From Caecitellus pseudoparvulus (taxonomy: Eukaryota; Protista; Bigyra: Bicosoecida): a stretch of 64,000 nucleotides of DNA. This document shows, one piece after another, positions 1-37,784 of the stretch. The DNA lies in contig CBFFRQ010000067.1 in assembly GCA_965644315.1 (NCBI GenBank), positions 558,001 through 622,000 of the forward strand, in the 5' to 3' direction. Numbering within the stretch: position 1 is the stretch's first letter; each line of letters starts with the position of its first letter. The notes under the pieces were generated by a model. That model saw only the letters and a list, made by a program, of their open reading frames with translations, had not been told where the DNA came from and ran no database searches. Position numbers and translations under genes: made by a program.

Positions 1-438
1 CCCTGGAGCGAGTAGCCTGGCTCGGTACATGCTGGGCTGGGAGTATGGGCGGTACATTGCTGTTTGTTCTGCATTCAGGTGCAGCCGCCACGCGAGTCCG
101 GCGTTTGCTGGGTTGGCGTGGAGGCCGGCCAAGCAAACTTGCACTGCACCGCTTGCAACAGGGCAGGGCGTGTACACATGGACACGATGCACCACATGCT
201 TCACCCAAGGCAGCCACCAGCATGGCCTGAAGTGCCAAGAGCATTGCAGGCGAGCACTGTATCTAGAGCAGCGCAAATGACCGATCTGTGGCGCGTACAA
301 GCCCGTTGTGTAGCTGCAATGAGTCCGCCTGCCAGGCTGCACTCCATCTCTGCACTCCTGAACCAACCACAGCCGGTGCAAGTCCCGTACAACCACCCAT
401 TCTCGTCATGCACACTCGGCATGTGTGGCAAGGCGGGC
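1..438. repeat. Long-spacer segment, copy 1 (truncated by window start)
   Basis: Bases 1-44 are identical to 5528-5571, the middle is diverged, and ~225-438 is again highly similar to ~5750-5963. Confidence 0.85.
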
Positions 439-472
439 GATCTTGACATTCTCCTTTTGCCGTCCCCCCTGC

Positions 473-1471
473 TCACTCTGACCGTGAAGCCTTCCCTGCC
501 GGAGATGCTCTTGCTGACCGTCTGTGTGGCCGTGGCTGCCTCCGCGCTCTCAAGGTTGCGCGCAGCAGCACCATGGACCGCCGCCCTTGCCGAGTGCTCG
601 TGCCGCCCCACACAGCATCCTTGCCGAGCCGCACAGCTGCCTGTCCGGCCTCAAGTCGTGCTTGCAGTGGGATGGAGCGATGGCCGGTAAGGGCCAGAAG
701 CTCTCGAATCACGTCCGCCTGTGCTCTTTCCCAGGCATAACGGAAAGCAATGTCACTCTCGCCCCCAACTCCAGCATGCACGTCCACGGCTCGGTGCCCA
801 GTCAATGCGAGCAGCTCGCGCACCACATCCACGTGACCCTTAATACAGGCCCATAGGAAGCCAAACTCAGGCTCACCCACAGGCCCAGCGTGCACATCCA
901 CCTCACGGTGCCCAGTCAGCGCCAACAGCTCGCGCACCACTGCCGCATGTCCGTACTGACAGGCCCATCGAAAGCCAAACTCAGGATTACCCTTACAGCC
1001 AGCATGCACATCCACCTCACGGTGCCCAGTCAGTGCCAGCAGCACACGCACCACTTCCAGATGCCCATTGCGGCAGGCATACCGGAAGCAATACTCGGGG
1101 TAGCCCTTGGGTCCAGCGTGCACATCCACCTCGCGTTCACCTGTCAGAGCCAAGAGCTCGCGCACCACATCAATGTGTCCGTGCACACATGCAGCTCGGA
1201 AGCCAGCCTCGGGCCCATCATCATCCCCAGTATGCACATCCACAGCACAATCCCCCTCCAACGCCAGAAGCTTGCGCAGCAAATCCGCGTGCCCTGTCCT
1301 GCATGCAGCCAGAAACACTGCTGTTGACTCGCTACTCGTCAAGCCTTCCACCTCCGCCTCCACACCACCCCCATTCCCCTGCAACAAGCTTAGCAGTTGA
1401 CTCGTCTCCTCAGCATCACATGCGGTCCGCCACTTCGCAAAAAAGAAGTGATTGCCGCTGTCGTCAGCCAT
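473..1471 (-). CDS. Variable ankyrin-cassette protein, copy 1 (76-aa N-cap + 5 x 38-aa repeats + 66-aa C-cap; 332 aa)
   Basis: ORF 473..1504. True start taken as MADDSG (ATG at 1471) by alignment with the paralogues. Repeats VDVHAGxxxxxExGFxxACxxGHxDVVRELLALTGxRE carry the ankyrin AxxGHxxVVxxLL core. Intronless. Confidence 0.88.
   Translation of the reverse strand: MADDSGNHFFFAKWRTACDAEETSQLLSLLQGNGGGVEAEVEGLTSSESTAVFLAACRTGHADLLRKLLALEGDCAVDVHTGDDDGPEAGFRAACVHGHIDVVRELLALTGEREVDVHAGPKGYPEYCFRYACRNGHLEVVRVLLALTGHREVDVHAGCKGNPEFGFRWACQYGHAAVVRELLALTGHREVDVHAGPVGEPEFGFLWACIKGHVDVVRELLALTGHRAVDVHAGVGGESDIAFRYAWERAQADVIRELLALTGHRSIPLQARLEAGQAAVRLGKDAVWGGTSTRQGRRSMVLLRATLRARRQPRPHRRSARASPAGKASRSE
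674..1243 (-). repeat. 5 x 114-bp coding tandem repeat (copy 1)
   Basis: 114-bp periodicity of cagctc(g/c)cgcaccacat and cagcatgcacatccacctcac. Confidence 0.9.
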
Positions 1472-1711
1472 GGTATGTTGGATCCAGTTTCCGCACTTCC
1501 CCACCTCTCACCAACCTACGCTACTGCACGGGTAGCACAGGCGGTACAGGCAAGAAGCTTGATCGCCTGTGCACACTGCACAACCATAGAAGGGTGTATT
1601 GTGTCTGACCAAGGGCATTGAATGCCCGGCATTGCGTGTCATGCCCATTTGAATGTGCTTGGCTCACGGCGTGTGCATTGCCCAGGTCACAGACCACGCC
1701 TGCGCCCCCGC
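1472..1711. repeat. 240-bp intergenic spacer, type A, copy 1
   Basis: Nearly identical to 3395-3634, with the same length. Confidence 0.9.
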
Positions 1712-3394
1712 TCACTCTGACCGTGAAGCCTTCCCTGCTCGCGACCCCACTGCACTGCCTGCGTGTGGCCGTGGCCGCTTCCGTGCTCTCAAGGTTGCGC
1801 GCAGCAGCACCATGGCGTGCCGCCCTTGCCGAGTGCTCGTGCCGCCCCACACGGCATCCTTGCCAGGCTGTACAGCTGCCTGACCAGCCTCAAGTCGCGC
1901 TTGCAGTGAGATGGCGCGATGGCCGGTGAGGCCCAGCAGCTCACGCACTACGCCAACGTTTCCATGCTCACAAGCAATTTGAAAGCCATCCTCAGACGTC
2001 GCCCCACCCTCAGCATGCACATCAACCTCACGATGTCCTGTCAGTGCCAGCAGCTCCCGCACCACATCAATGTGCCCATTCTGACAGGCAGCTCGGAAGC
2101 CATCCTCAAGCTCACCTGGTAGCCCAGCATGTACGTCCACCTCGCGTTCCCCAGTCAGCGACAGCAGCTCACGCACCACATCCACATGCCCTTTCTGACA
2201 AGCAAGTTGAAAGCCCTCCTCGGGATCGCCCTCAGGCCCAGCATGCACGTCAACCTCACGATCTCCGGTCAGAGACAGCAGCTCCCGCACCACAAAGACA
2301 TGCCCATTCGCACAGGCACCTAGGAAGCCGTCCTCAGGACAACCCTCCGGCCCAGCATGCACATCCACCATGCGATGCCCGTCCAGAGCCAGCAGTTCTC
2401 GAACTACATCGACATGCCCATGGTAACAGGCAAGTCGGAAGCCAGCCTCAGGCCCGTTCTGATCTCCAGCATGCACGTCAACCTCACGATCGTCCGTCAG
2501 CGCCAGCAGCTCCCGCACCACATCAATGTGCCCGTTCCAGCAGGCAAACCGGAAGCCATACTCCTCCTGATCTTCACGCCCAGCATGTACATCCACCTCA
2601 CGATGCCCACTCAAAGCCAATAGCTCCCGCACCACATCAATGTGCCCATTCTGGCAGGCAAGCCGGAAGCCAGCCTCAAGTTTACCCTCAGGCCCAGCAT
2701 GCACATCTACCTCACGATGCCCACTCAAAGCCAGTAGCTCCCGCACCACACCAATGTGCCCGTTCCAGCAGGCAAGCCGGAAGCCAACCTCAGACCTGCC
2801 CTCAGGCCCAGCATGCACATCAATCTCACGATCTCCAGTCAGCGCCAGCAGCTCCCGCACCACATCGACATGCCCATTCTGGCAAGCAAGCCCGAAGGCA
2901 AACCCAGGCTTGCCCTCGGGCCCAGCATGCACGTCTACCTCACGATCTCCGGTCAGCGCCAGCAGCTCTCGCACCACATCAATATGCCCGTTCTGGCAAG
3001 CGAGATGAAAGCCTGCCTCAGGCCCGTTCTGATCTTCAGCGTGCACGTCAACCTCACGATGTCCTGTCAGCGCCAGCAGTTCCCGCACCACATCGACATG
3101 CCCGTTGGCGCATGCACACCGAAAGCCACGTTCAGGGTGGCCGTCGAGCCCTTGATGCACATCCACAATAAGCTCCCCCTCCAACGCAAGTAGCCCACGC
3201 AGCAACCCAACATGCCCAGTTCTGCACGCAACCAGGAAGCCAGCCGTTGTCTCGTCACTGGTCAAACCTCCCAACACCGTCGTTCCACCATCTCCACACA
3301 CTTGCAGTATGCTCAGCAGTACAGTTGCCAGACTATTGTCACAGGCTGCCACCAACCGAGCCGCCAATGAATGCACGTTGCTCGCATCAGCCAT
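1712..3394 (-). CDS. Variable ankyrin-cassette protein, copy 2 (11 repeats; 560 aa)
   Basis: Intact ORF; 76 + 11x38 + 66 = 560 aa exactly; same caps as the paralogues. Confidence 0.9.
   Translation of the reverse strand: MADASNVHSLAARLVAACDNSLATVLLSILQVCGDGGTTVLGGLTSDETTAGFLVACRTGHVGLLRGLLALEGELIVDVHQGLDGHPERGFRCACANGHVDVVRELLALTGHREVDVHAEDQNGPEAGFHLACQNGHIDVVRELLALTGDREVDVHAGPEGKPGFAFGLACQNGHVDVVRELLALTGDREIDVHAGPEGRSEVGFRLACWNGHIGVVRELLALSGHREVDVHAGPEGKLEAGFRLACQNGHIDVVRELLALSGHREVDVHAGREDQEEYGFRFACWNGHIDVVRELLALTDDREVDVHAGDQNGPEAGFRLACYHGHVDVVRELLALDGHRMVDVHAGPEGCPEDGFLGACANGHVFVVRELLSLTGDREVDVHAGPEGDPEEGFQLACQKGHVDVVRELLSLTGEREVDVHAGLPGELEDGFRAACQNGHIDVVRELLALTGHREVDVHAEGGATSEDGFQIACEHGNVGVVRELLGLTGHRAISLQARLEAGQAAVQPGKDAVWGGTSTRQGRHAMVLLRATLRARKRPRPHAGSAVGSRAGKASRSE
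1913..3166 (-). repeat. 11 x 114-bp coding tandem repeat (copy 2)
   Basis: 114-bp periodicity with no indels. Confidence 0.92.
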
Positions 3395-3634
3395 GGTGTG
3401 TTAGATCCAGTTTCCGCACTTCCCCACCTCTCACCAACCTACGCTACTGCACGGGTAGCACAGGCGGCACAGGCAAGAAGCTTGATCGCCTGTGCACACT
3501 GCACAACCATAGAAGGGTATACTGGGTTTGACCAAGGGCACTGAATGCCCGGCATTGCGTGTCATGCCCATTTGAATGTGCTTGGCTCATGGCGTGTGCA
3601 TTGCCCAGGTCACAGACCACGCCTGCGCCCCCGC
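3395..3634. repeat. 240-bp intergenic spacer, type A, copy 2
   Basis: Nearly identical to 1472-1711. Confidence 0.9.
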
Positions 3635-4975
3635 TCACTCTGAGCGTGAAGCCTTGCCTGCCAGAGATAATCTTCCCGATCTTGTGTGTGAACGTGGCCG
3701 CTTCCTCGTTGACAAAGCAGCTCGCAGCAGCACCATGGCGCGCCGCCCTTGCCGAGTGCTCGTGCCGCCCCACACGGCATCCTTGCCCAGCTCCACAGCT
3801 GCCTGTCCAGCCTCAAGTCGTGAATACACTGAGATGGTGCGATGGCCCGTGAGGCCCAGAAGCTCTCGAACCACATCGACATGCCCATTCTGACAGGCAA
3901 CATGGAAGGCAAACTCAAGCCATTCCGCAGGCCCTGCGTGTACGTCCACCTCACGATGCCCACTCAAAGCCAGTAGCTCTCGGACAACATCCGCGTGGCC
4001 GTTTGCGCAAGCTGCTCGGAAGCCAGCCTCAGGAACACCCCCAAACCCAGCGTGCACGTCCACCTCACGATGCCCAGTCAGCGCCAATAGCTCCCGCACC
4101 ACATGAACATGGCCATTCTGGCAGGCAGCTCGGAAGCAATACTCTGGTTCTTCCTCAGGCCCAGCATGCACATCAACCTCACGATGTCCGGTCAGTGCCA
4201 GCAGCTCCCGCATCACATCAATGTGGCCGTTCTGGCAAGCAAGTCCGAAGCCAGCCTCAGGCCCGTTCTCATCTCCAGCGTGCACGTCCACCTCACGATG
4301 CCCACTCAAAGCCAGTAGCTCTCGGACAACATCCACGTGGCCGTTTGCGCAAGCTGCTCGGAAGCCAGCCTCAGGAACACCCCCAAACCCAGCGTGCACG
4401 TCCACCTCACGATGCCCAGTCAGCGCCAATAGCTCCCGCACCACATGAACATGGCCATTCTGGCAGGCAGCTCGGAAGCCAGCCTCAGGAACACCCCCAA
4501 ACCCAGCATGCACATCAACCTCACGATGCCCGGTCAGTGCCAGCAGCTCCCGCACCACATCAATGTGCCCAGTCTCACAGGCCAGCCGGAAGCCAGCCTC
4601 GGGCCCGTTCTCATCTCCAGCGTGCACGTCAACTTCACGATCACCTGTCAACGCCAAAAGTTCACGCACAACCTCCACATGCCCGAGTGTACATGCTTGT
4701 CGAAAACCAAACTCGCGTTCTCCCTCAGGCCCCTCATGCACATCCACCTCGCTGCTTCCCTCCAATGCCAGCAGCCCACGCAGCAACCCAATATTTCCAG
4801 TCCCGCACGCAACGACAAAGCTAACAGTCGAAAAGTTGCAAGTCTTTCCTCCAACATCAACACGCACGTCACCTCGACACCCCTGCTGCATGCTCAACAG
4901 TATACCTGCCTCCGCATCATCGCATTCAGCCACCATCTGTGCCACCCAAGACTGCTCGCTGTCCGCATCAGCCAT
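3635..4975 (-). CDS. Variable ankyrin-cassette protein, copy 3 (8 repeats; 446 aa)
   Basis: Intact ORF; 76 + 8x38 + 66 = 446 aa. Confidence 0.9.
   Translation of the reverse strand: MADADSEQSWVAQMVAECDDAEAGILLSMQQGCRGDVRVDVGGKTCNFSTVSFVVACGTGNIGLLRGLLALEGSSEVDVHEGPEGEREFGFRQACTLGHVEVVRELLALTGDREVDVHAGDENGPEAGFRLACETGHIDVVRELLALTGHREVDVHAGFGGVPEAGFRAACQNGHVHVVRELLALTGHREVDVHAGFGGVPEAGFRAACANGHVDVVRELLALSGHREVDVHAGDENGPEAGFGLACQNGHIDVMRELLALTGHREVDVHAGPEEEPEYCFRAACQNGHVHVVRELLALTGHREVDVHAGFGGVPEAGFRAACANGHADVVRELLALSGHREVDVHAGPAEWLEFAFHVACQNGHVDVVRELLGLTGHRTISVYSRLEAGQAAVELGKDAVWGGTSTRQGRRAMVLLRAALSTRKRPRSHTRSGRLSLAGKASRSE
3836..4747 (-). repeat. 8 x 114-bp coding tandem repeat (copy 3)
   Basis: 114-bp periodicity; near-identical block repeated at a 342-bp offset (3979 vs 4321). 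Confidence 0.92.
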
Positions 4976-5212
4976 GCCGTTGCGAATGCAGATTCCGCAC
5001 TTCTGGCGCCCACCTACCTACACTTTTGCACGGGTTGCACGGGGGGTACAGCACAGTGTCGTATGAGCAGCTGCGATCCATAGCCTGTAGCAAGTGGAAG
5101 GAGTGGGTGTTGTTTTGACCAAGACGGTGAAGTGTCCTGCCTGCCCAGCCTGCGTTGCTGAACCGCCACCCCCCTCGATCCTCAAACGGCGCCGGTACAG
5201 TGTCGCTCCTGA
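4976..5212. repeat. Upstream region type B, copy 1 (5' of ankyrin copy 3)
   Basis: Highly similar to 7985-8221 (gccgttgcgaatgcagattccgcacttctggcgcccacc ... gttttgaccaagacggtgaagtgtcctgcctgcccagcctgcgttgctgaaccgccaccccctcgatcctcaaa). Confidence 0.85.
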
Positions 5213-5235
5213 TGCGGCCTGCGCCAGGCCGCATC
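5211..5235. other. Perfect 10-bp inverted repeat (GATGCGGCCT-gcgcc-AGGCCGCATC)
   Basis: Read directly; lies where high similarity between the two type-B upstream regions ends. Confidence 0.6.
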
Positions 5236-5267
5236 CAAGCGCCGCTCGGCTCTGCAAGGCATCGAGG

Positions 5268-5805
5268 ATGCAGCGGAAATGCTGCCGCTGGTCTCTGCTG
5301 CGTCAGCCTCCCCCCCGGGCGGGGGTCAGGCGACCTCCTCGTCCCAAATCACTCACGAGGGAGGGCGGGAAGCTCCACCTCTCCTTGCCCCTGCCGCCGT
5401 TCGCGCTGGACGTGCACCTCGAAGCCCAGCGCGGAGCCTTACGACGCCCCATGGAGACGAGACTCCCCTTCAAGCGACGCCCGACGCGCAAGGGCGACCA
5501 GGCGCGGTGCTGGGAGCGACAGGGACACCCTGGAGCGAGTAGCCTGGCTCGGTACATGCTGGGCTGGGAGTGTGGGCGGCAAGCACTGTGTGGCAACTCA
5601 CTTATATGCAGCGTCTTGGCAAGGCGGGCTTGCCCTTTGTTAGCGGGGAGGCTTAGCACACACACTTGCACGGCACCGCTTGCAACAGGGGCAGGAGTTG
5701 CGCGTGGATACTGCGCACCATCCGCTTCAGGAATAAGAAGCCCATAATGGCATGAAGTGCCAAGAGCATTGCAGGCGAGCACTGTATCTAGAGCAATACA
5801 AATGA
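5268..5805 (+). CDS. Putative small spliced gene or gene fragment in the long spacer (hypothetical)
   Basis: High-GC3, coding-like stretch (GGKLHLSLPLPPFALDVHLEAQRGALRR...ARYMLGW). A possible intron 5570-5774 joins it to ERALYLEQYK*. The same GT, TTGCAG and stop are present in the copy at 43-280. Confidence 0.3.
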
Positions 5806-5963
5806 CCGATCTGTGGCGCGTAGAAGGCCGTTGTGCAGCTGCAATGAGTCCGCCTGCCAGGTTGCACTCCATCTCAGCACTCCTGGAACAGCCACAGCCT
5901 GCGCAGGTCCCGTACAACCACCCACTCCAGTCATGCACACTCGGCATGCGTGGCAAGGCGGGC
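5528..5963. repeat. Long-spacer segment, copy 2
   Basis: Homologous to 1-438. Confidence 0.85.
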
Positions 5964-6187
5964 ATTCTCGAAGCAGACCCGGTGCCTCTACTTTCAATAC
6001 CACACAGCAAACCTGATACGCCTCCACACCTTCCCCCTTCTCCGCGCCCAAGTATGCGTCTGAGGAATAGTTAATCCGCATCCCTGCCATGCGACCACGT
6101 GGCTGTAAGCATGAACATCTGCCCAGGGGTATGCTTTGCTGGGAATATGTGCATTGCTCGGCACACAGTCCATGCCTGCGCCCCCGC

Positions 6188-7984
6188 TCACTCTGACCGT
6201 GAAGCCTTCCCTGCTCGTGACCCCACTGCACTGCCTGCGTGTGGTCGTGGCCGCTTCCGTGCTCTCAAGGTTGCGCGCAGCAGCACCATGGCGTGCCGCC
6301 CTTGCCGAGTGCTCGTGCCGCCCCACACGGCATCCTTGCCAGGCTGCACAGCTACCTTTCCAGCCTCAAGTCGCGCTTGCAGTGAGATGGCGCGATGCCC
6401 CGTGAGAGCAAGAAGCTCTCGAACCACATCGACATGCCCTTTCCGACAAGCAAATCGGAAGCTCGCCTCAGGCCCTTCCTCACACCGAGCATGCACGTCA
6501 ACCTCACGATCTCCTGTCAGTGCCAGCAGCTCTCGCACCACATCAATGTGGCCGTTCCGACAGGCATACCGGAAGCCATACTCCTCCTGGTACTCACGCC
6601 CAGCATGTACATCAACGGCCCGAGGTCCGCTCAGAGCCAGCAGCTCCCGCACCACATCGACATGCCCATTCCGACATGCCCACCGAAATCCAGCCTCAGA
6701 GGTCCCATTGGCCCCAGCATGCACATCAACGGCCCGAGACCCGCTCAGAGCCAGCAGTTCACGCACCACATCGACATGCCCTTTCCGACAAGCGAGCTGA
6801 AAGCCTGTCTCAGGCCCTTCCTCACACCAAGCATGCACATCTATCTCGCGATCTCCGGTCAGCGCCAGCAGCTCCCGCACCACATCAATGTGGCCGTTCC
6901 GACAGGCATACCGGAAGCCATACTCCTCCTGGTACTCACGCCCAGCATGTACGTCAACCTCACGATCTCCGGTCAGCGCCAACAGCTCCCGCACCACATC
7001 GACATGCCCTTTCCGACATGCCCAACGAAATCCAGCCTCAGGCTTGCCCTCGGTCCCAGCGTGCACGTCAACCTCACGATCTCCGGTCAGCGCCAGCAGC
7101 TCCCGCACCACATCAAGGTGCCCGTTCTGGCAGGCTAGCCGGAAGCCAGCCTCAGGCCCGCTCTGATCTCCAGCATGCACATCAACGGCCCGAGGCCCGC
7201 TCAGAGCCAGCAGTTCCCGCACCACATCGACATGCCCTTTCCGACAAGCGAGTTGAAAGCCAGCCTCGGGCTTGCCCTCAGGCCCTGCATGCACGTCAAC
7301 GGTTCGAGGCCCGCTCAGCGCCAGCAGCTCCCGCACCACATCGACATGCCCATTCTGGCAAGCAAGTCCGAAGCCAAACCCAGGCTTGCCCTCGTGACTT
7401 GCATGCACGTCGACCTCACGGTGCCCAGTCAGCGCCAGCAGCTCCCGCACCACATCGACATGCCCGTGTTGGCAGGCGAGATGAAAGCCTGCCTCAGGCT
7501 TGCCCTCAGGCCCAGCGTGCACATCAACCTCACGATCTCCGGTCAGCGCCAGCAGCTCCCGCACCACATCGACATGCCCATTCTGACAGGCAAGCCGGAA
7601 GCCAGCCTCAGGCCCGCTCTGATCTCCAGCATGCACGTCAACCTCACGATGTCCTGTCAGCGCCAGCAGTTCCCGCACCACATCGACATGCCCGTTGGCG
7701 CATGCACACCGAAAGCCACGTTCAGGGTGGCCGTCGAGCCCTTGATGCACATCCACAATAAACTCCCCCTCCAACGCAAGTAGCCCACGCAGCAACCCAA
7801 CATGCCCAGTTCTGCAAGCAACCAGGAAGCCAGCCGTTGTCTCGTCACTGGTCAAACCTTCCAACACCGTCGTTCCACCATCTCCACACACTTGCAGAAT
7901 GCTCAACAGTACAGTTGCCAGACTATTGTCACAGGCTGCCACCAACCGAGCCGCCAATGAATGGTCACTGTCGGTATCAGCCAT
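6188..7984 (-). CDS. Variable ankyrin-cassette protein, copy 4 (12 repeats; 598 aa)
   Basis: Intact ORF; 76 + 12x38 + 66 = 598 aa. N-cap, repeat 1 and C-cap are nearly identical to copy 2. Confidence 0.9.
   Translation of the reverse strand: MADTDSDHSLAARLVAACDNSLATVLLSILQVCGDGGTTVLEGLTSDETTAGFLVACRTGHVGLLRGLLALEGEFIVDVHQGLDGHPERGFRCACANGHVDVVRELLALTGHREVDVHAGDQSGPEAGFRLACQNGHVDVVRELLALTGDREVDVHAGPEGKPEAGFHLACQHGHVDVVRELLALTGHREVDVHASHEGKPGFGFGLACQNGHVDVVRELLALSGPRTVDVHAGPEGKPEAGFQLACRKGHVDVVRELLALSGPRAVDVHAGDQSGPEAGFRLACQNGHLDVVRELLALTGDREVDVHAGTEGKPEAGFRWACRKGHVDVVRELLALTGDREVDVHAGREYQEEYGFRYACRNGHIDVVRELLALTGDREIDVHAWCEEGPETGFQLACRKGHVDVVRELLALSGSRAVDVHAGANGTSEAGFRWACRNGHVDVVRELLALSGPRAVDVHAGREYQEEYGFRYACRNGHIDVVRELLALTGDREVDVHARCEEGPEASFRFACRKGHVDVVRELLALTGHRAISLQARLEAGKVAVQPGKDAVWGGTSTRQGRHAMVLLRATLRARKRPRPHAGSAVGSRAGKASRSE
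6389..7756 (-). repeat. 12 x 114-bp coding tandem repeat (copy 4)
   Basis: 114-bp periodicity; repeats 8 and 11 encode identical peptides at a 342-bp offset (6559 vs 6901). Confidence 0.92.
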
Positions 7985-8221
7985 GCCGTTGCGAATGCAG
8001 ATTCCGCACTTCTGGCGCCCACCAACCTACACTTTTGCACAGGCGGCACAGGCTGTGCGGCACAGGGTCGCAAGAATAGTTGCGATCCAAAGCCTGTTGC
8101 AAGTGGAGGACGTAGGTGTTGTTTTGACCAAGACGGTGAAGTGTCCTGCCTGCCCAGCCTGCGTTGCTGAACCGCCACCCCCCTCGATCCTCAAATGGCG
8201 CCGGCACATCGTTGCTCCTGA
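7985..8221. repeat. Upstream region type B, copy 2 (5' of ankyrin copy 4)
   Basis: Highly similar to 4976-5212. Confidence 0.85.
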
Positions 8222-15661: not shown

Positions 15662-16210
15662 GACTGACGCTCACTGGGCGCCCGGCAGGCCTGGACTGGT
15701 GCAGCGGTCACCCTGAACGGCGTGTCACAGGCCACCCTGCTCTGGCACAGACCTTACTCAAGGAAGGGTGCACTGCAGGCCTCAAGAAACCTGCACGTGC
15801 ACAGGCTGGCTGTTTTTGGTTTGCGCAGCCCCGGGACTTGGCGCTGCGGCGACACGGAGCCAGGCCAACGTGCACAGCCAAGCAGTGCAATCAGAGGCCC
15901 AATTTCTGGCAAAGAAAACACTTACGCAGCATGTCATTGGTGCGCCTTGTGTGTGTTGGGACTGCGCTGCCTGTGCCATTGCGTGCCGAAACTTGCCTGC
16001 GCCTGCCAGGTGCACTCGCTGGGCTGCAAGTTCCGCTGCTCCACCTCCAAGCTCGCCCGAACAGAGAGGGACGCGGCGCCTGTTCAGCAGGGAGATAGTT
16101 CACTCTTTTTAAGTGTGTATCGGTGTTTTGCAAGCGCAGACCCTCGCAGGTGCCCGGTTCCGCAGCGTTTCACTCTGACTCTGCTCACCCCTCCATCGCA
16201 GGCTGACGCC

Positions 16211-18121
16211 ATGGCAACTGCAGCAGACGGCAGACTTCGGGAGGCCGTGCGGAACTCCAACCTGCAGCAAGTGAAGTCTGCATTGCAGCAAGGTGCCTCG
16301 CCCAACGCATTTAGCAGTGAACCGCTGCTCATGTGTGCTGTGGAAAAGCGCAGCGAGGAGGTGGTGCAGGCGCTGCTGGATGCGGGGGCGCTTGTGAACG
16401 AGACCTCCTCCTCCTTGAACGTCACAGCGTTCTGGAAGGCGTGCATGCTGGGCGAGGTTGGTCTGGCTCGCCTGCTCCTGGACCACGGTGCTGACCCCGC
16501 CCTGAAGTCCTCCTCTGGCGCCTCGGGCGCCCTGGTGGCCATTGAGTTCGGCCACGAGGGCATCATTGACCTGCTCCTGGAAATTGGCGCTGACATTTTC
16601 GAACCCAGGGATGACGGCAGCACGGCACTGGGCGTGGCCATCAGCTGGGACCAGACGGCCCTGGCGCTGCGTCTGCTTAACTTAGGCGCTGATGCGCAGC
16701 AAGCCAGCGCAGGCGGTTGGCTGCCGCTGCACATCGCGGGGGAGAAGGGCAACGTCCCCGTCATCAAGGCTCTGCTGCTGGCCGGCGCAGAGGTGGACAT
16801 GCCGGGGCCGCAGGACGAAACTGCCCTGTGGACAGCCTGCCGCGGTGGGAACTTGGAGGCTGCCAAGGTGCTGCACGAAGCTGGCGCTGACCCCAGCGCC
16901 CTGACTGGCTACGGCGCTAGCTGTGCATTCATCGCTTGCGAGTCTGGCAGCCTGCCTGTGCTGAACTGGCTTGCAGGGCTGGGCGTGGACGTCTTGGTGA
17001 AACGCAGCGGAAATGACGCCACCCCCCTGGGCATTGCCCTGTCCAAGAACCACACTGACGTGGCTCTGCGCCTGCTGGAGCTGGGCGCTGACCCAAACCA
17101 GGTTGGAGAAAACGGATGGTTTGCCCTGCACATTGCGGTGGAAAAAGACATGGCCACGGCGCGGCGGGAGCTGCTGCGCGCAGGTGCCAAATGCGACATG
17201 CCCGGTGGGTCAGGTGGCCTCACGCCGCTGGGCATTTCCCTGCGCCTGACCGACACTGCAGTGCTGTCTGAGCTGCTGCAGCACCACGGAGATGCAGACG
17301 CTGCGTACGATGACGAGCAGAGCTGCTTGGAATGGGCCATTGAGCATGGCATGTGGGCCCACGTGCGGGCGCTGCTGGAGGCTGGCGCGCGCATGGGCCC
17401 AGCGCCAGGTGACTCGGCGGAGTCACCTGGTGAGAAAGCGGCGCAGGCTGCCCTGATGCACGCCCCGGCTGGGGAGCTGCAGCGCTGCTTCGAGTATGGT
17501 TGGGACGCATCCGTGCCGTTTCACAATGGCGACTCGGTGCTGCACGTGCTGGTGCGGCGTGAGGAGTCCCTGAACGGCGTGATCAAGGTGCTGACCCAGC
17601 ACGGCGCTCAAGTGCAGGCTGAAAACGCGCAGGGCCTGTCGCCTTGCATGCTGGCGGTGATGGCTGGCAAGGCCGACGTCGTGACCGCACTCTTGGAGGC
17701 CGGCGCTGACGCAGCAGAGCCGTTGCCGACGGGCGAGTCACTGCTGCACCGTGCGTTGGAGGAAAAAGCTGAAGGCTGTGTTTTGGCGCTTCTGGAGCAC
17801 GGCGCGGAGGTGGACGGCACCTTCAAATATGGCGACGGGCCGCTGCACCACGCCATTCGGCACAACATGCCCCGTGCAGTGGAGGCACTCCTGGCACACT
17901 CCGCCAGCGCCACGGAACCGAACGCACAAGAAGACACGCCCCTGCACCTTGCCGTGCAGTTCTGCCTGCAGGTGTGCGCGCCTCTCGTGCGCCGTGGGGC
18001 AGATTTGCACGCTGAAGATGGTGAAGGGCTCACAGCGGCGGAAGTTGCCGAGTCGCAAGGCCTGACTGAGGCGGTGCAAGAGCTGGAGCAGCTGGAAGCA
18101 CAGCAGCCGTCAAGCTCATGA
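16211..18121 (+). CDS. Ankyrin repeat protein (conventional, diverged ~33-aa repeats)
   Basis: Many TPLH/PLHIA..G...V..LL..GAD motifs. Start taken at MATAADG; there is a CAG acceptor just upstream, so an upstream exon is possible. Confidence 0.85.
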   Translation: MATAADGRLREAVRNSNLQQVKSALQQGASPNAFSSEPLLMCAVEKRSEEVVQALLDAGALVNETSSSLNVTAFWKACMLGEVGLARLLLDHGADPALKSSSGASGALVAIEFGHEGIIDLLLEIGADIFEPRDDGSTALGVAISWDQTALALRLLNLGADAQQASAGGWLPLHIAGEKGNVPVIKALLLAGAEVDMPGPQDETALWTACRGGNLEAAKVLHEAGADPSALTGYGASCAFIACESGSLPVLNWLAGLGVDVLVKRSGNDATPLGIALSKNHTDVALRLLELGADPNQVGENGWFALHIAVEKDMATARRELLRAGAKCDMPGGSGGLTPLGISLRLTDTAVLSELLQHHGDADAAYDDEQSCLEWAIEHGMWAHVRALLEAGARMGPAPGDSAESPGEKAAQAALMHAPAGELQRCFEYGWDASVPFHNGDSVLHVLVRREESLNGVIKVLTQHGAQVQAENAQGLSPCMLAVMAGKADVVTALLEAGADAAEPLPTGESLLHRALEEKAEGCVLALLEHGAEVDGTFKYGDGPLHHAIRHNMPRAVEALLAHSASATEPNAQEDTPLHLAVQFCLQVCAPLVRRGADLHAEDGEGLTAAEVAESQGLTEAVQELEQLEAQQPSSS

Positions 18122-28151: not shown

Positions 28152-30559
<2,408 letters not shown>

Positions 30560-32793: not shown

Positions 32794-33377
32794 GCTGACT
32801 ATGGAGTACTGCGTGCAGAGAGGTCCGCCCCTGCCAGCAGGACTTCGCTGGCCCGCCCTCTGCCGCCGCTCTAGTGCTCAGCTCGGCTGCTCGGGCAATC
32901 CTGCCTACTTCGCCCGCACTTGCATGAGCCAATACTTCGTCCAGGGCCCCTGCTCTGGATGGCAAACGGGTGGAGAGGGGGGAACTTATACTTGAAATTC
33001 CTGTCAAAGTGCTTGTGGAGGGAAATGGTTTGAGCAAAGGTTGCATTTGGAAGGAGTAAGTGAACGCGTCTACGATGATGCTTTTGCCATCCCGTTAGCA
33101 TTCGTAGTTCTCGCAACTCGAAGTCTGGACCCTCGCAAATTCAATTGCACTACCGTTTGATCCACAACCACGAGCATCGTAAGCACGCTGGCTCCAACCT
33201 TATGAGCCCAGATTCCTGTTTTGAAGTGCTTGCCAACGGAAGGCACAACAATGCTCGGCACTCCAAGTCGGCTTGCGCTCTCGGTGCGTGGGGGCGATAC
33301 CTTCCCGCGCAGTGTGGAGTCCACTGCAACGTGCAATGCTTCCTGCGCAGCCCCTGGCTGGCAACTCTTCCCAGTCC

Positions 33378-34628
33378 ATGCTCTCCAGCAAGCGGTCCGG
33401 AGGGGCGCGGGGCGGAGCAAAATCCGCTCGGAAGCGCAGCACTGCTGCCAAAGCAGTGCACCCTTCGCCTCTGAGGCAAGAGGCTACCCCGGCGCGGCCC
33501 TCATCGACGCACCAAGACACGACGGCACGCAAGCTCACTTTTGTGACAGAAGCTCAGCAGCATCAAGTTGTGTCCGAACGCTCCTGCTTGGATCAGAGCA
33601 CACCGCCACGTCAACGGCAGCAGTGCTCGACACCCACACCCATCGCGCCAACACCAAGCACAGTGCGACACGTCCCACCTCCAGGACTGTCATTGACCGG
33701 CGCGGCGACACCGTACATGCAGCGGTACCTTGCCGTGAAGCTGAAGGAGGCACAGCAGCGCATCGAAGCATTGGAGGCAGGCGAGCCGAGTGCTGCACCA
33801 CCGGCCATGCCAGATGTCGTGGTGAAGCTGCAGGGAAAAGTGCAGTGGTTACTGGCTGAGAACGAGCGACTCCGAGATGCGCTTGCATGTGCAGTGGCAA
33901 AGGCGTCGCCAGGGCGAGGCAGCAGCATTGCAGCTTCGCAGCTGGCTCGGCGCATGCTGGCAGACGCCCTGAAGGGCAAGCGAGCCAAGAGGCCGGGAGG
34001 CATGCCAGACCTGATAATCCGCGCTGGGAAGCACAGTCCGAGGCAGACGTTCAACACGCCTGGAAGCCTGCCCGGCACTCCTGCAACACAAGCACAGAGT
34101 TGCAGTGGGCTCAGCTTTCACTCACCCGGGACACCGCCAACACGCAGCACCCAAGGCTCCCCCGCCGAGACCCTACGCCACCCGGCTGTGACACCCGGCA
34201 TTTTCTTCTCGTCGCTGGCTTCTGCGAGTCCTGCCGGCGTTGCGGCCGTGGCACGGGCTGGGTCCCGGGCTCACTTGACGGGTCTCGTGCGAGCTCGTGC
34301 TGCTGCGTCACCATGCCCGGCGTTGCCACCGAAGCTCTCCTTCATTGAGCGAGCATTCCTAGCAGCTGGAAGCGGAGACGCCTCTACGCTCCAGTGCCTT
34401 CTGGATGAGGGACTCTGCCCTGATGTGATGGACGCGCAGGGGGCCACCCTACTCGTGACTGCAGCAAGCGGCGGCTGCGCAGAATGTGTGCATGCTCTTC
34501 TGCAAGCGGGCGCCGACGTGGCGCTGCACGCAGGCGGTGCCACGAACACCAGTGCATTGAAGGCTGCGGTGTCTGGGAATCATCTAGAGGCTGCACGTCT
34601 CCTCATCCAGGCGGGCGCGCCGTGGTAG
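33378..34628 (+). CDS. Hypothetical protein with coiled coil and ~3 C-terminal ankyrin repeats
   Basis: KLKEAQQRIEALE / LLAENERLRDAL coiled coil; AAGSGD..LQCLLDEG, AASGGCAECVHALLQAGADV, AAVSGNHLEAARLLIQAGA. Start codon uncertain. Confidence 0.7.
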   Translation: MLSSKRSGGARGGAKSARKRSTAAKAVHPSPLRQEATPARPSSTHQDTTARKLTFVTEAQQHQVVSERSCLDQSTPPRQRQQCSTPTPIAPTPSTVRHVPPPGLSLTGAATPYMQRYLAVKLKEAQQRIEALEAGEPSAAPPAMPDVVVKLQGKVQWLLAENERLRDALACAVAKASPGRGSSIAASQLARRMLADALKGKRAKRPGGMPDLIIRAGKHSPRQTFNTPGSLPGTPATQAQSCSGLSFHSPGTPPTRSTQGSPAETLRHPAVTPGIFFSSLASASPAGVAAVARAGSRAHLTGLVRARAAASPCPALPPKLSFIERAFLAAGSGDASTLQCLLDEGLCPDVMDAQGATLLVTAASGGCAECVHALLQAGADVALHAGGATNTSALKAAVSGNHLEAARLLIQAGAPW

Positions 34629-34651: not shown

Positions 34652-37600
34652 TCAGGCTTGCGAGGCACCCAGCACCACTTCGCGAGCCGGCTCCCGCATG
34701 TTGTAGCTGCTGGCCATGACTCGGCCATATGCTCCAGCATTGGTGATGAGCAGGACGTCCCCCGGGGCCGTGCTGCTGGGCAGCAGGACGTCTGTGCCCA
34801 GCACATCGCCGCTCTCACAAATGGGCCCCACCACTGTTACGCTCGCGTCCGGTTCACTTCCGGCACGGGAGAGATTCACAATGCTGTGGTATGATCCGTA
34901 CAGTGCTGGGCGAATGAGGGAATTCATGCCGGTGCTGGCGCCGACGTACCGCCGGCCGCCCTTGGTGCGTTGCTGCGTGACTCGAGTCAGCAGCACGCCA
35001 GCTGGCGCGACACAGTACCGCCCAGGCTCCATGCGGATCTCAAGGGGGCGCTCGAGGCCCCGCGCCTGCTCTGCAACTGGGGCTAGGGCAGCGGCGAGGG
35101 CGCCAGCCTGCACGGCGACGCTGGGCTGCACCACAGAGGCGGGAGGAGTTGATGCGGAGGTGATGGTGTGCAGAGTGCTGTGCTCGTGGCCATGCTCCAC
35201 ACCCAAGCCACCGCCCAGGTCCACCCACTGCAGGTGCGGGAAAGCAGCCTGGCCATCCTCTTTCAACAGAGCAGCAGCTTGGAAGTGTGCTTGGGCCACC
35301 CGCACCCAGTTCTGCGGGTCACGAATGCCCGAGCCTGAGTGTGCGTGCAAGCCCACAATGAGGCAGCCCACTTCCTCCGCTGCTGCGGCTGCATCCAGCA
35401 GAGATGCTTGGTCACAGCCGAACTTCTGCCCTGGGCCGGAGGTGATAACTTTGTTGTGGTGGCCGTCCCCCGCGTTGGGGTCGATGCGCAGCCCAACGCG
35501 CTGCCCCTTGAACACACCCGGCGCCTGCAGCAACACTTCAGGGCCATCGATGATGACCTCTGCGCCGGCAGCGAACGCAGCAGCGTACTCTGACACTGGG
35601 CAGAAGTTGGGCGTGAACACGAGCCGTGCGCCTGGCGTGCCGTGTTTCAGGCAGTGCTGCACCTCGGCGTACGAAACGCACTCGTACCCGAACCCCGCGT
35701 CGCCCATCGCACGCAGCACAGCTGGGTGGTCATTCGCCTTCATGGCGTACAGCCAGGTGTTCACTGCCGGAACACCGCTGCGCAAGTGCGCCGCACGTGC
35801 GCGCACCTGGGCGACATTGTAAACGTATGCGCAGTCGCCGTCTCCGCTCAGCACACCCAGCAGCTGCTGCCGCACGCTGGCGTCTGTCCACCACTGCACA
35901 GGCACACGCCCCTCTCCTTCAGAAGGGGGCAAGTCCAGTGGGGGCAGGGGCGGCGGCTCCACTGCCGCTGCTGCTCCAGTGTGCACATGGCCCCCCGCGA
36001 CGAGGGGGGAGGTGCGCGCTCGTTCCGCCAGAGCCGACCATGACATGCCGAACTGCAGCTGGGCCGCCGAGGTGGCCAGGCCAGCTTGCGGCGTGGACAG
36101 CAGGTTCTCGTGCAGCGCCTTGAGCAGCGTGTCCCCATGCTCGCCGTCCACGACGAAGGACAGGTTCAGGTCTTCCGTCGCCTCACTCAGCATGTGCACG
36201 GGGATGCCTTGCATCACGGACATGGACAGCCCCAGCTGTGGCAGCACAGTGCGCAGGGCGCGCCCGACGATGGACACCACGGCACAGTCATGCTGCACAG
36301 TCACAGAGCAGACTTTCTTCAAGTCCAGCAACACGCGCTGGAAGGGCGTGCCAGTGGGGCCGCCTGGGATGTAGTCCAGCGTCACGGACACGGCGTACTG
36401 CGACGTGGCAATGAGGTCCACAGACACGCCTGCGTCGGAGAAGGGCTGGAACACCTTGGTCAAGAAACCCGCCTCGCCCCACATGCTGAAGGCGGCCATA
36501 GTGATCATGGTCACTCCCCGCCGCCTGGCCACCGCCAAAATCCGCGCAGCTGGCACTCCCGTCTCCCCCACCGTCAACGAGCCGTCGGCAGTGCTAGCGA
36601 CGGAGGCCAGGGCCTCGCCTGGGATGCTAGCGGCAGAAGGGATGGAGTGGCGCTTGTTCTGCATGCTGCTGGGCACCACGAGGCTGCCTGCTTCGCCTGC
36701 TGCCGCTGCTGTGCCGCTGTCAGTAGATTCGGCGCAGTCGACGCCGAGGGCGACGCCAGACACGCCAATGCGTGTGCGCTGCAGCACCACCTCTGCGCCG
36801 TCCTCCCCCATCAACTGTGGGTCCAGCGTGTTGCGGATTTCCACCGGAACCTGTGCCACGCGTGCAGGCGGCAGGCACCGTGCGTGCAGCACCTTGGCGC
36901 CCATTGCCGCCAGCTCTTGCGCTTCACGGTACGACAGGTGGCGCAGGAGGCGGGCACCAGGCACCAGGCGGGGGTCTGCTGTGAACATGCCGTGGACGTC
37001 AGTCCAGATTTCGATGCGGTGCGCGTCCAGCAGCGCGCCGAAGAGGGACGCAGACGTGTCGGATCCGCCCCTGCCCAGCAGTGCGGTCTCTCCCTTGGGC
37101 GTCGTGGCCAGGAAGCCCTGCGTGATGACGATGCGGGACTCCGCAGGCACGTGCTTGTTGATGCGCTGGGGGTCCACGACGGGCTGCACGTCGGCCTCCA
37201 GGAACCGGTCTGCCTCGCTCAGGCGTGGGTCGTCCACTGTGACCAGGATGTCCCGAGCATCCAAGCGCAGCGTATCCAAGCCGTGGTGGCGCAGGTACGC
37301 CAGGCCAAGGTGGCTGCTCATCAGCTCGCCAAAACTGGACACACGTGCTTGCAAGCGAGGGGACACTTCCCGTGTCAGCTGGATGCCCTGCAGCAACTTG
37401 TGCAGCTCAGAAAGCAGGCCGGCGACGGGTTCGAATTCCGCATCTGCCAAGCCCATGGCTTCCGCCAACGCCTTGTGCTTTGTAGCGACAACCTCGTACG
37501 CTGCAAAGGCCGCCTCATCTTCGTGGCTGACAAGGTGTTCCAGTGTCTTCTCCAGCGTGTTCGTCACCTGCGTGCAACGGAGGGGGAGGCGGGGATGCCT

Positions 37601-37784
37601 GCGTCGCTGTGGTCTGTGCTCTTTCTCACTGGGCATGCCTCACCTGGCTGAGGGCAGAGACGACGATCCACACTCGGTGCCGGGGCAGGAGGCTGCGGAC
37701 ACGCTTGGCGATGACTTCCCACCCGCCTTCCGCCGCCACGGACGTCCCTCCGAACTTCAGAACAACCCAGTCAGTGCTGGGCAT
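34652..37784 (-). CDS. lysAC: Bifunctional aspartate kinase / diaminopimelate decarboxylase (LysC-LysA fusion; 2 exons)
   Basis: VLKFGGTSV, LGRGGSDTSA, WTDVHG and ACT domains, followed by YAMKAN (PLP lysine), EPGRY, GPICESGD and GAYG. Confidence 0.93.

Follow-up and report, generated by a model that had tools for sequence, protein, structure and literature searches.

Why does a stretch of the Caecitellus pseudoparvulus genome carry, side by side, four ankyrin genes that share a nearly fixed scaffold and differ radically at a few positions? The genes, g1 to g4, lie within the first 8 kb of a 64,000-nt stretch called here the window (C67:558001-622000, from a genome of 30.6 Mb in 215 contigs), and each is built from an N-cap, a series of 38-residue cassettes encoded by 114 bp, and a C-cap. 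A reading of the sequence alone had taken them for a diversifying intracellular recognition family resembling designed ankyrin repeat proteins (DARPins). From the features described below we lean slightly towards g1-g4 being members of a large, stand-alone, intracellular ankyrin repertoire of protein binders, in which a constrained scaffold would display variable hairpin residues (7, 8 and 10) and a variable helix-1 face (13, 17, 20 and 21). Unequal crossing-over in the germ line would add, remove and reorder whole cassettes and duplicate or fuse whole genes, while short gene-conversion tracts would mix hairpin and helix variants inside a cassette.

A family of capped 38-residue ankyrin cassettes

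The gene formula of 76 + n x 38 + 66 residues, with n = 5, 11, 8 and 12, proved exact by translation, and all 36 cassettes share a single minus-strand frame without a stop, in agreement with the co-oriented, intact reading frames described earlier. The assignment to ankyrins is not due to chance, since Pfam Ank_2 matches the window proteins with E = 4e-22 to 5e-57. The repeat is nevertheless a variant one, given that T-P-L-H is replaced by x-G-F-x and that the period is 38 residues (34 in some cassettes) rather than 33. The sequence-only reading had placed the five additional residues in a longer loop, whereas alignment to consensus ankyrins resolves the unit into 33 residues plus four in the linker that follows helix 2 and a single one in the hairpin; the four linker residues are conserved and lie on the back side of the solenoid. 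The same alignment, made against consensus ankyrins whose structures are known, ruled out a long-hairpin, LoopDARPin-like reading. No publication on this family was found in a literature search, and the 38-residue capped form is a lineage-specific elaboration.

Among the 35 distinct window cassettes, positions 2, 3, 4, 15, 18, 26, 28, 30, 31, 33 and 37 are invariant, in keeping with the near-fixed scaffold first noticed, and entropy is highest at 7, 8, 10, 13, 17 and 20 (2.3-3.2 bits), followed by 9, 16 and 21 (1.6-2.0 bits). The same peaks (7, 8, 10, 13, 17, 20 and 21) recur across about 600 distinct cassettes of other loci. The radical variation formerly ascribed to all of positions 6-13 thus holds for 7, 8, 10 and 13, but not for 6, 11 and 12, which are fairly conserved (0.5 bit for E12). 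Position 13 aligns with a framework Thr, and 17, 20 and 21 with consensus positions 10, 13 and 14. Seven-site words are diverse (457 distinct among 595 cassettes), and aromatic residues make up 12% at the seven variable sites, compared with 0.5% for the back face and 6% for the proteins of the host in general. The variable face probably binds proteins. Each repeat carries a net charge of -2 to -4 and the C-cap is basic, so the cap might possibly fold back onto the acidic groove.

An AlphaFold2 model of g1, based on a 49-row alignment, is an ankyrin solenoid with a predicted local distance difference test score (pLDDT) of 85, whereas the single-sequence fold was poor (pLDDT 58). In the model, helix 1 begins at cassette position 13, the linker holds a three-residue helix and the N-cap forms two additional helix pairs; its best structural match is a designed ankyrin (Z 20.8, root-mean-square deviation 3.4 over 225 residues). 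Alignment and predicted model together bear out an ankyrin fold whose hairpin and exposed helix-1 face carry the variable sites; the placement of these sites on the concave face comes from alignment and secondary structure, not from model coordinates. The caps, described as fixed, are so in length and not in sequence, as N-caps are 43-53% identical except in g2 and g4 (92%) and C-caps are 73-97% identical, and most family members stop about 43 residues into the C-cap. With 19-residue hydropathy peaking at 1.1-1.6, g1-g4 show no clear membrane segment. Nor is a signal peptide likely, because the mildly hydrophobic stretch at residues 14-32 of g2 and g4 is aligned with amphipathic cap helices.

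The four genes belong to a large family, as a genome-wide count had been expected to tell: searches of the own genome gave at least 125 N-caps and at least 150 C-caps, and the motif of the first five cassette codons has 1,792 exact matches in the whole genome against 90 for the reversed pattern. Family statistics are based on about 80 open reading frames, with contigs C56, C68 and C202 checked by coordinates and yes/no junction patterns alone. In the retrieved loci, genes hold 3 to 45 cassettes and follow one another head to tail, separated by 200-400 bp. Of 62 family genes, 49 have the hexamer GCGGAA no more than 45 nt from the start, compared with an expectation of 0.02 per gene, which makes it a candidate promoter element, although its conservation may be through shared descent. 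Related repeats are also present in proteins labelled viral metagenome. About 50 reverse transcriptases of the non-LTR (non-long terminal repeat) type are clustered at contig ends, in many contigs within the first 50 kb, and family genes lie immediately inward of them; at C54:250178-260100 a Sel1-repeat gene is in part duplicated along with the adjoining ankyrin gene.

Recombination, selection and the setting of the array

Changes in cassette number and order, which the sequence-only reading had anticipated, were found between apparent alleles (45 vs 9+20, 24 vs 19 and 5 vs 3 cassettes). Contigs C157 and C54 share two flanking genes at 96% identity, and C157 is most simply the other haplotype of C54; the first two of these comparisons set the 45- and 24-cassette genes of C54 against the 9+20 and 19 cassettes of C157, and between these genes, which have the same caps, only 12 and 9 cassettes, respectively, are collinear. 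Contig C175, which is either an allele or a paralogous array of the window genes, carries a g3-like gene in the same cassette order, a g1 from which precisely cassettes 2 and 3 are missing, and a g4-like gene with 13 cassettes, of which 7 are collinear. The three-cassette g1 was also found in five metagenome proteins from short-read assemblies, and on one metagenome contig two such forms follow each other, the tail and spacer of the first being of the g2 type. Because these assemblies may come from one study, the recurrence is not proof of separate populations.

Recombination also reaches below the cassette. Linkage between variable bases decays over 6-15 nt (r2 drops from 0.34 to 0.05 within 16 nt), a decay that was significant in five of five gene sets (permutation p = 0.001), and four-gamete violations reach 50-60% at distances above 16 nt. 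In one gene pair, 43 cassettes contain 33 combinations out of 12 x 4 x 8 x 6 module variants. The nearest relatives of a cassette are for the most part within its own gene, in that gene's allele or in an adjoining gene; within the window, cassettes 4 and 7 of g3 differ by 1 nt and the first cassettes of g4 and g2 are identical. Long genes are labile and short genes stable between assemblies, and the near-identical 240-bp spacers of the window (Table 1) provide homology for unequal crossing-over between genes. Since changes of number and order, linkage decay and this pattern of stability are all expected from ordinary recombination, unequal crossing-over and short conversion tracts are sufficient and a special enzyme is not required. 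Consistent with the earlier remark, no dedicated recombinase was found in the window; the analogy drawn with VLRs found no support in the assembled sequence, where the genes are complete and no sign of somatic assembly was seen.

Some family genes outside the window are interrupted. A 2,200-bp non-coding element (C157:11231-13430) is inserted at scaffold codon 27 without target duplication, and it was recognised by both junctions in C157, C175 (37-2236) and C68 (~668933-671132), by the right junction in C202 and by phase in C56, and thus in four or five family genes at one scaffold position. The copies on C157 and C175 differ from each other at 2 nt, the cassettes that host them at 21 of 114 nt and as close as 2 nt to the junction, and these insertions are therefore independent. 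The element ends are Helitron2-like, as that group is defined by short asymmetric inverted repeats, a 3' hairpin, a 5' T and no target duplication (PMC3627910): there are a 13-bp inverted repeat with one mismatch, a 3' hairpin and a 5' T, although the 5' hairpin is weak, and the hairpin fold has a z of only -1.1; an internal 31-bp hairpin is present. Helitron2 inserts between T and T (PMC11417382), whereas this element lies between G and T. No RepHel transposase was found inside it and no copy in JGI metagenomes. Readings of the insert as an intron, a ribozyme or a coding element were rejected, canonical splice ends, Rfam matches above cut-off and Pfam matches all being absent, as was 5' truncation at microhomologies, both patterns of which were absent. 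Its 8-nt target occurs in 60% of cassettes and seldom outside them, and this abundance, together with tolerance of insertion in redundant genes, explains the pattern; no sign was found that the element drives shuffling.

Elements related at 65-75% lie at C69:488543, C68:1026213, C209:1912 and 4608, C151:981 and 3665, C23:46930 and C50:158891, and at least those on C69, C68, C209 and C50 adjoin family genes in the same orientation. Elsewhere in the genome there are five PIF1 loci, one of which (C180:15608-16087) is within a 2,092-aa frame and is a candidate autonomous Helitron-like element. A Ngaro-type retrotransposon with split direct repeats sits inside a cassette of C183 (locus L046:2953-8777), with a solo repeat at C54:242930. 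The recombinase of this element was considered as a cassette shuffler and rejected, as most of its at least 17 near-identical full copies are away from known family loci and its insertion phase is different.

To what extent selection shapes the variable sites depends on the test. Nonsynonymous to synonymous ratios (pN/pS) counted on close pairs are 0.07-0.11 in the core and 0.8-1.35 at the eight sites of highest variability, where the intervals include 1. Pairwise likelihood gave replacement to synonymous rate ratios (omega) of 1.0-2.1 at position 13 (1.4-2.1 in close pairs), 1.0-1.5 at 17, about 1 at 20 and 21 and 0.4-1.2 at hairpin positions 7-10. A tree-based test with site-specific synonymous rates found an excess of replacements at 13 and 17 only (likelihood-ratio statistics, 2dL, of 12.3 and 20.8), and with a single common synonymous rate 13, 17, 20 and 21 all stood at 1.0. 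The predicted ratio above 1 throughout 6-13, 16-17 and 20-21 is thus confined to 13 and 17, whereas the ratio far below 1 predicted for the scaffold was observed, omega being below 0.15 at most of its positions. The defensible statement is that the scaffold is strongly constrained and the concave face released; diversifying selection at the helix-1 sites 13 and 17 is probable, and selection for new specificities may be what drives them.

The layout of the array is given in Table 1. No fifth array gene was found within 10 kb to the left of the window. The rest of the window contains ordinary eukaryotic genes, for the most part intronless (Brr2, CLU, BEACH, photolyase, RRS1 and RPB8), and near-identical DNA from the same species is present in ENA metagenomes named ZHEN20-1 (98-99% identity across 4-7 kb). 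For Brr2, no named relative exceeds 67%, and in a tree it groups with a EukProt entry; together with a database label of the contaminant type, this tree might suggest a heterotrophic marine stramenopile. Two more ankyrin genes, at 15722-18121 (+) and 33273-34628 (+), are without the 38-residue cassette motif. A 457-aa frame at 28152-29525 (-) has a histone fold confined to residues 352-453, preceded by a long N-terminal extension or an upstream open frame. An aspartate kinase/diaminopimelate decarboxylase fusion is encoded at 34652-37636 (-); its cluster includes a Symbiodinium sp. KB8 protein, which is probably a contaminant of the KB8 assembly.

Table 1. Genes, spacers and short motifs of the ankyrin array (window positions)
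Feature	Position	Strand	Parts and further copies
g1, 332 aa	473..1471	-	N-cap 1244-1471; 5 cassettes 674-1243; C-cap 473-673
g2, 560 aa	1712..3394	-	N-cap 3167-3394; 11 cassettes 1913-3166; C-cap 1712-1912
g3, 446 aa	3635..4975	-	N-cap 4748-4975; 8 cassettes 3836-4747; C-cap 3635-3835
g4, 598 aa	6188..7984	-	N-cap 7757-7984; 12 cassettes 6389-7756; C-cap 6188-6388
240-bp spacer	1472..1711		near-identical copy at 3395-3634
1,212-bp spacer g3/g4	4976..6187		in part repeated left of g1 (window 1-472 and further out)
C-terminal motif D-A-V-W-x-G ... G-R-R-x-x-L-L-R	557..622 (g1)	-	others at 1796-1861, 3719-3784, 6272-6337
Upstream hexamer GCGGAA	1489..1494	-	starts 23 nt before g1 ATG; also 3412-3417, 4993-4998, 8002-8007

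The C-terminal motif and competing explanations

On the output side, no catalytic domain had been noted from the sequence, and g1-g4 contain no NTPase, kinase or other enzyme, only a lineage-specific C-terminal motif. In this C-cap motif W and G are invariant and G-R-x-x-x-L-L-R is near-invariant; it has no match in Pfam or PDB, and the C-cap matches no known domain in Pfam, PDB or the Atlas above 0.81. A profile search of 1.8 billion proteins returned 30 clusters, in which the full-length proteins scanned were ankyrin proteins and the others short fragments; the motif was found solely at the end of this ankyrin family. Looser versions of it terminate ankyrin proteins on putative virus-like contigs. 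The conserved basic motif might link each binder to one common partner. A related ankyrin gene lies tail-to-tail with a cullin gene (locus L062:10001-14576) on a 175-kb metagenome contig, which is dense in genes and encodes kinases and a cyclin as well, a neighbour that we take as a lead, no more, to a ligase-adaptor role.

A binder repertoire has to be weighed against a largely neutral expansion, in which a self-similar, stable repeat is amplified by unequal crossing-over, the fold is kept, the surface drifts, and the variety is the by-product of a generic or dosage role. Several observations speak for such drift or weigh against diversification for recognition. Omega is 0.5-1.0 at most variable sites, and positions 7-10, 16, 20 and 21 do not evolve faster than neutral; in the pairwise test, 24 and 34 on the back face come to about 1 as well, and because concave sites are not above neutral while these are near 1, shuffling by itself would inflate rates. 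Moreover, both selection tests ignore recombination, which biases them upward and is able to mimic omega above 1. Transposons are tolerated within the genes, many copies lie near contig ends and adjoin retroelement arrays, and only 44 of 70 uncut reading frames had both caps under the motif test, the rest including interrupted, frameshifted and merely divergent ones. A signalling domain is absent, and short genes have unchanged cassettes in independent assemblies, which fits fixed partners rather than fast turnover. Nonetheless, the concave face is far more variable than the equally exposed back face in both entropy and chemistry, positions 13 and 17 exceed neutrality in the tree-based test, and the hexamer and C-terminal motif are kept across 40-60% protein identity, for which reasons we consider a neutral origin unlikely, if still the most serious of the competitors. 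It is very improbable that the differing cassette numbers were created by misassembly: tandem 114-bp units are indeed difficult to assemble, but 34 of the 36 window cassettes encode distinct protein sequences, most often with over 10 nt of difference, their frames are open, and the three-cassette g1 recurs on C175 and in five short-read assemblies.

Other explanations concern what is bound. The genes could encode substrate receptors of cullin-RING ligases, the ankyrin face selecting targets and the C-terminal motif docking an adaptor or cullin, which would be compatible with a binder repertoire. Variable ankyrins with a single conserved terminal motif would suit this function, the top Foldseek matches are FEM1B/C and giant-virus F-box/ankyrin proteins, and the gene next to the cullin just described has a related repeat, ends in a similar motif and lies on a putative virus-like contig. 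These matches cover the ankyrin part only, with a TM score of about 0.5, the motif resembles no F-box, SOCS or VHL box in Pfam or PDB, so that no recognised adaptor-binding box is present, and a single cullin neighbour may be chance; we therefore hold the ligase role to be doubtful. Modular nucleic-acid binders with a repeat code of the TALE or PPR kind, imported into the nucleus by the basic tail, are suggested by regular repeats numbering up to 45 and by that tail in the window genes. However, the acidity of the repeats argues against DNA binding, and with it against the TALE analogy proposed earlier; there are seven variable positions, not one to three, with hydrophobic or aromatic residues at 13 and 17, and the basic 23-residue tail is missing in most family members, which leaves little room for this alternative. 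Returning to a repertoire of protein binders, its ligands may be non-self, namely giant-virus or bacterial proteins. The most far-reaching version, an antibody-mimic repertoire against giant-virus proteins that is renewed each generation by sub-repeat recombination and coupled, through a C-terminal motif common with giant-virus ankyrin proteins, to an effector such as a cullin ligase, is speculative and, we think, improbable.

Comparison with known repeat systems

To our knowledge, next to nothing is known of protein-level immunity in free-living heterotrophic protists. Ankyrin solenoids with a short conserved terminal module are found in FEM1, ASB and poxvirus ANK/PRANC proteins, which are substrate receptors of cullin ligases; the family described here shares this plan without a recognised adaptor-binding box. 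Tandem, co-oriented ankyrin genes with variable repeat number and recent duplication also recall the genomic accordions of Bodo saltans virus, with 148 ankyrin genes of 4-17 repeats (PMC5871332), although the present family belongs to a host, whose ordinary nuclear genes surround it.

Among engineered proteins, a published ankyrin library randomises positions 2, 3, 5, 10, 13 and 33, which make up one concave surface (PMC4308713). DARPins and ANK-N5C have in common with g1-g4 a fixed scaffold with caps and a variable hairpin and helix 1, cassette positions 20 and 17 corresponding to randomised positions 13 and 10. The statement that the variable sites are those randomised in DARPins is accordingly right for 20, 21 and the hairpin tip, and for 17 when the later library is included, but not for 13, the framework Thr, which here appears to be the most selected position. 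The present family is natural, has x-G-F-x for TPLH and a four-residue back linker, and ranges from 3 to 45 repeats. Hundreds of natural surfaces on a non-canonical 38-residue ankyrin scaffold would be useful for binder design, and the small, soluble-looking, modular members lend themselves to a ligand search by pull-down from infected and uninfected cells.

The closest parallels in evolutionary regime are with receptors. In fungal NLRs with highly conserved ankyrin repeats (Podospora; Dyrka et al. 2014), repeat-number polymorphism, concerted evolution and five sites under selection were reported (PMC4986451). High internal repeat identity, number polymorphism, concerted evolution and a variable inner helix and hairpin are common to both systems; here the unit has 38 residues, the genes are stand-alone and tandem, without a NACHT, NB-ARC or effector domain, and only two sites pass the selection test. 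Because the NTPase is missing, g1-g4 are not NLRs, although by analogy it is plausible that they work like NLR sensor domains. Candidate receptors of Ectocarpus, of the ROCO-LRR and NB-ARC-TPR types (Zambounis et al.), similarly show repeat shuffling, gene birth and death and diversifying selection (PMC3341825), outside animals and plants as in the present case; in the algal genes every repeat has its own exon and a GTPase or NB-ARC domain is part of the protein, whereas g1-g4 are intronless and without a switch domain. The regime thus has fungal and brown-algal precedents, and the family is real, large and demonstrably reshuffled; if our explanation is correct, it would extend the repeat-shuffling regime of those receptors to genes without a signalling domain.

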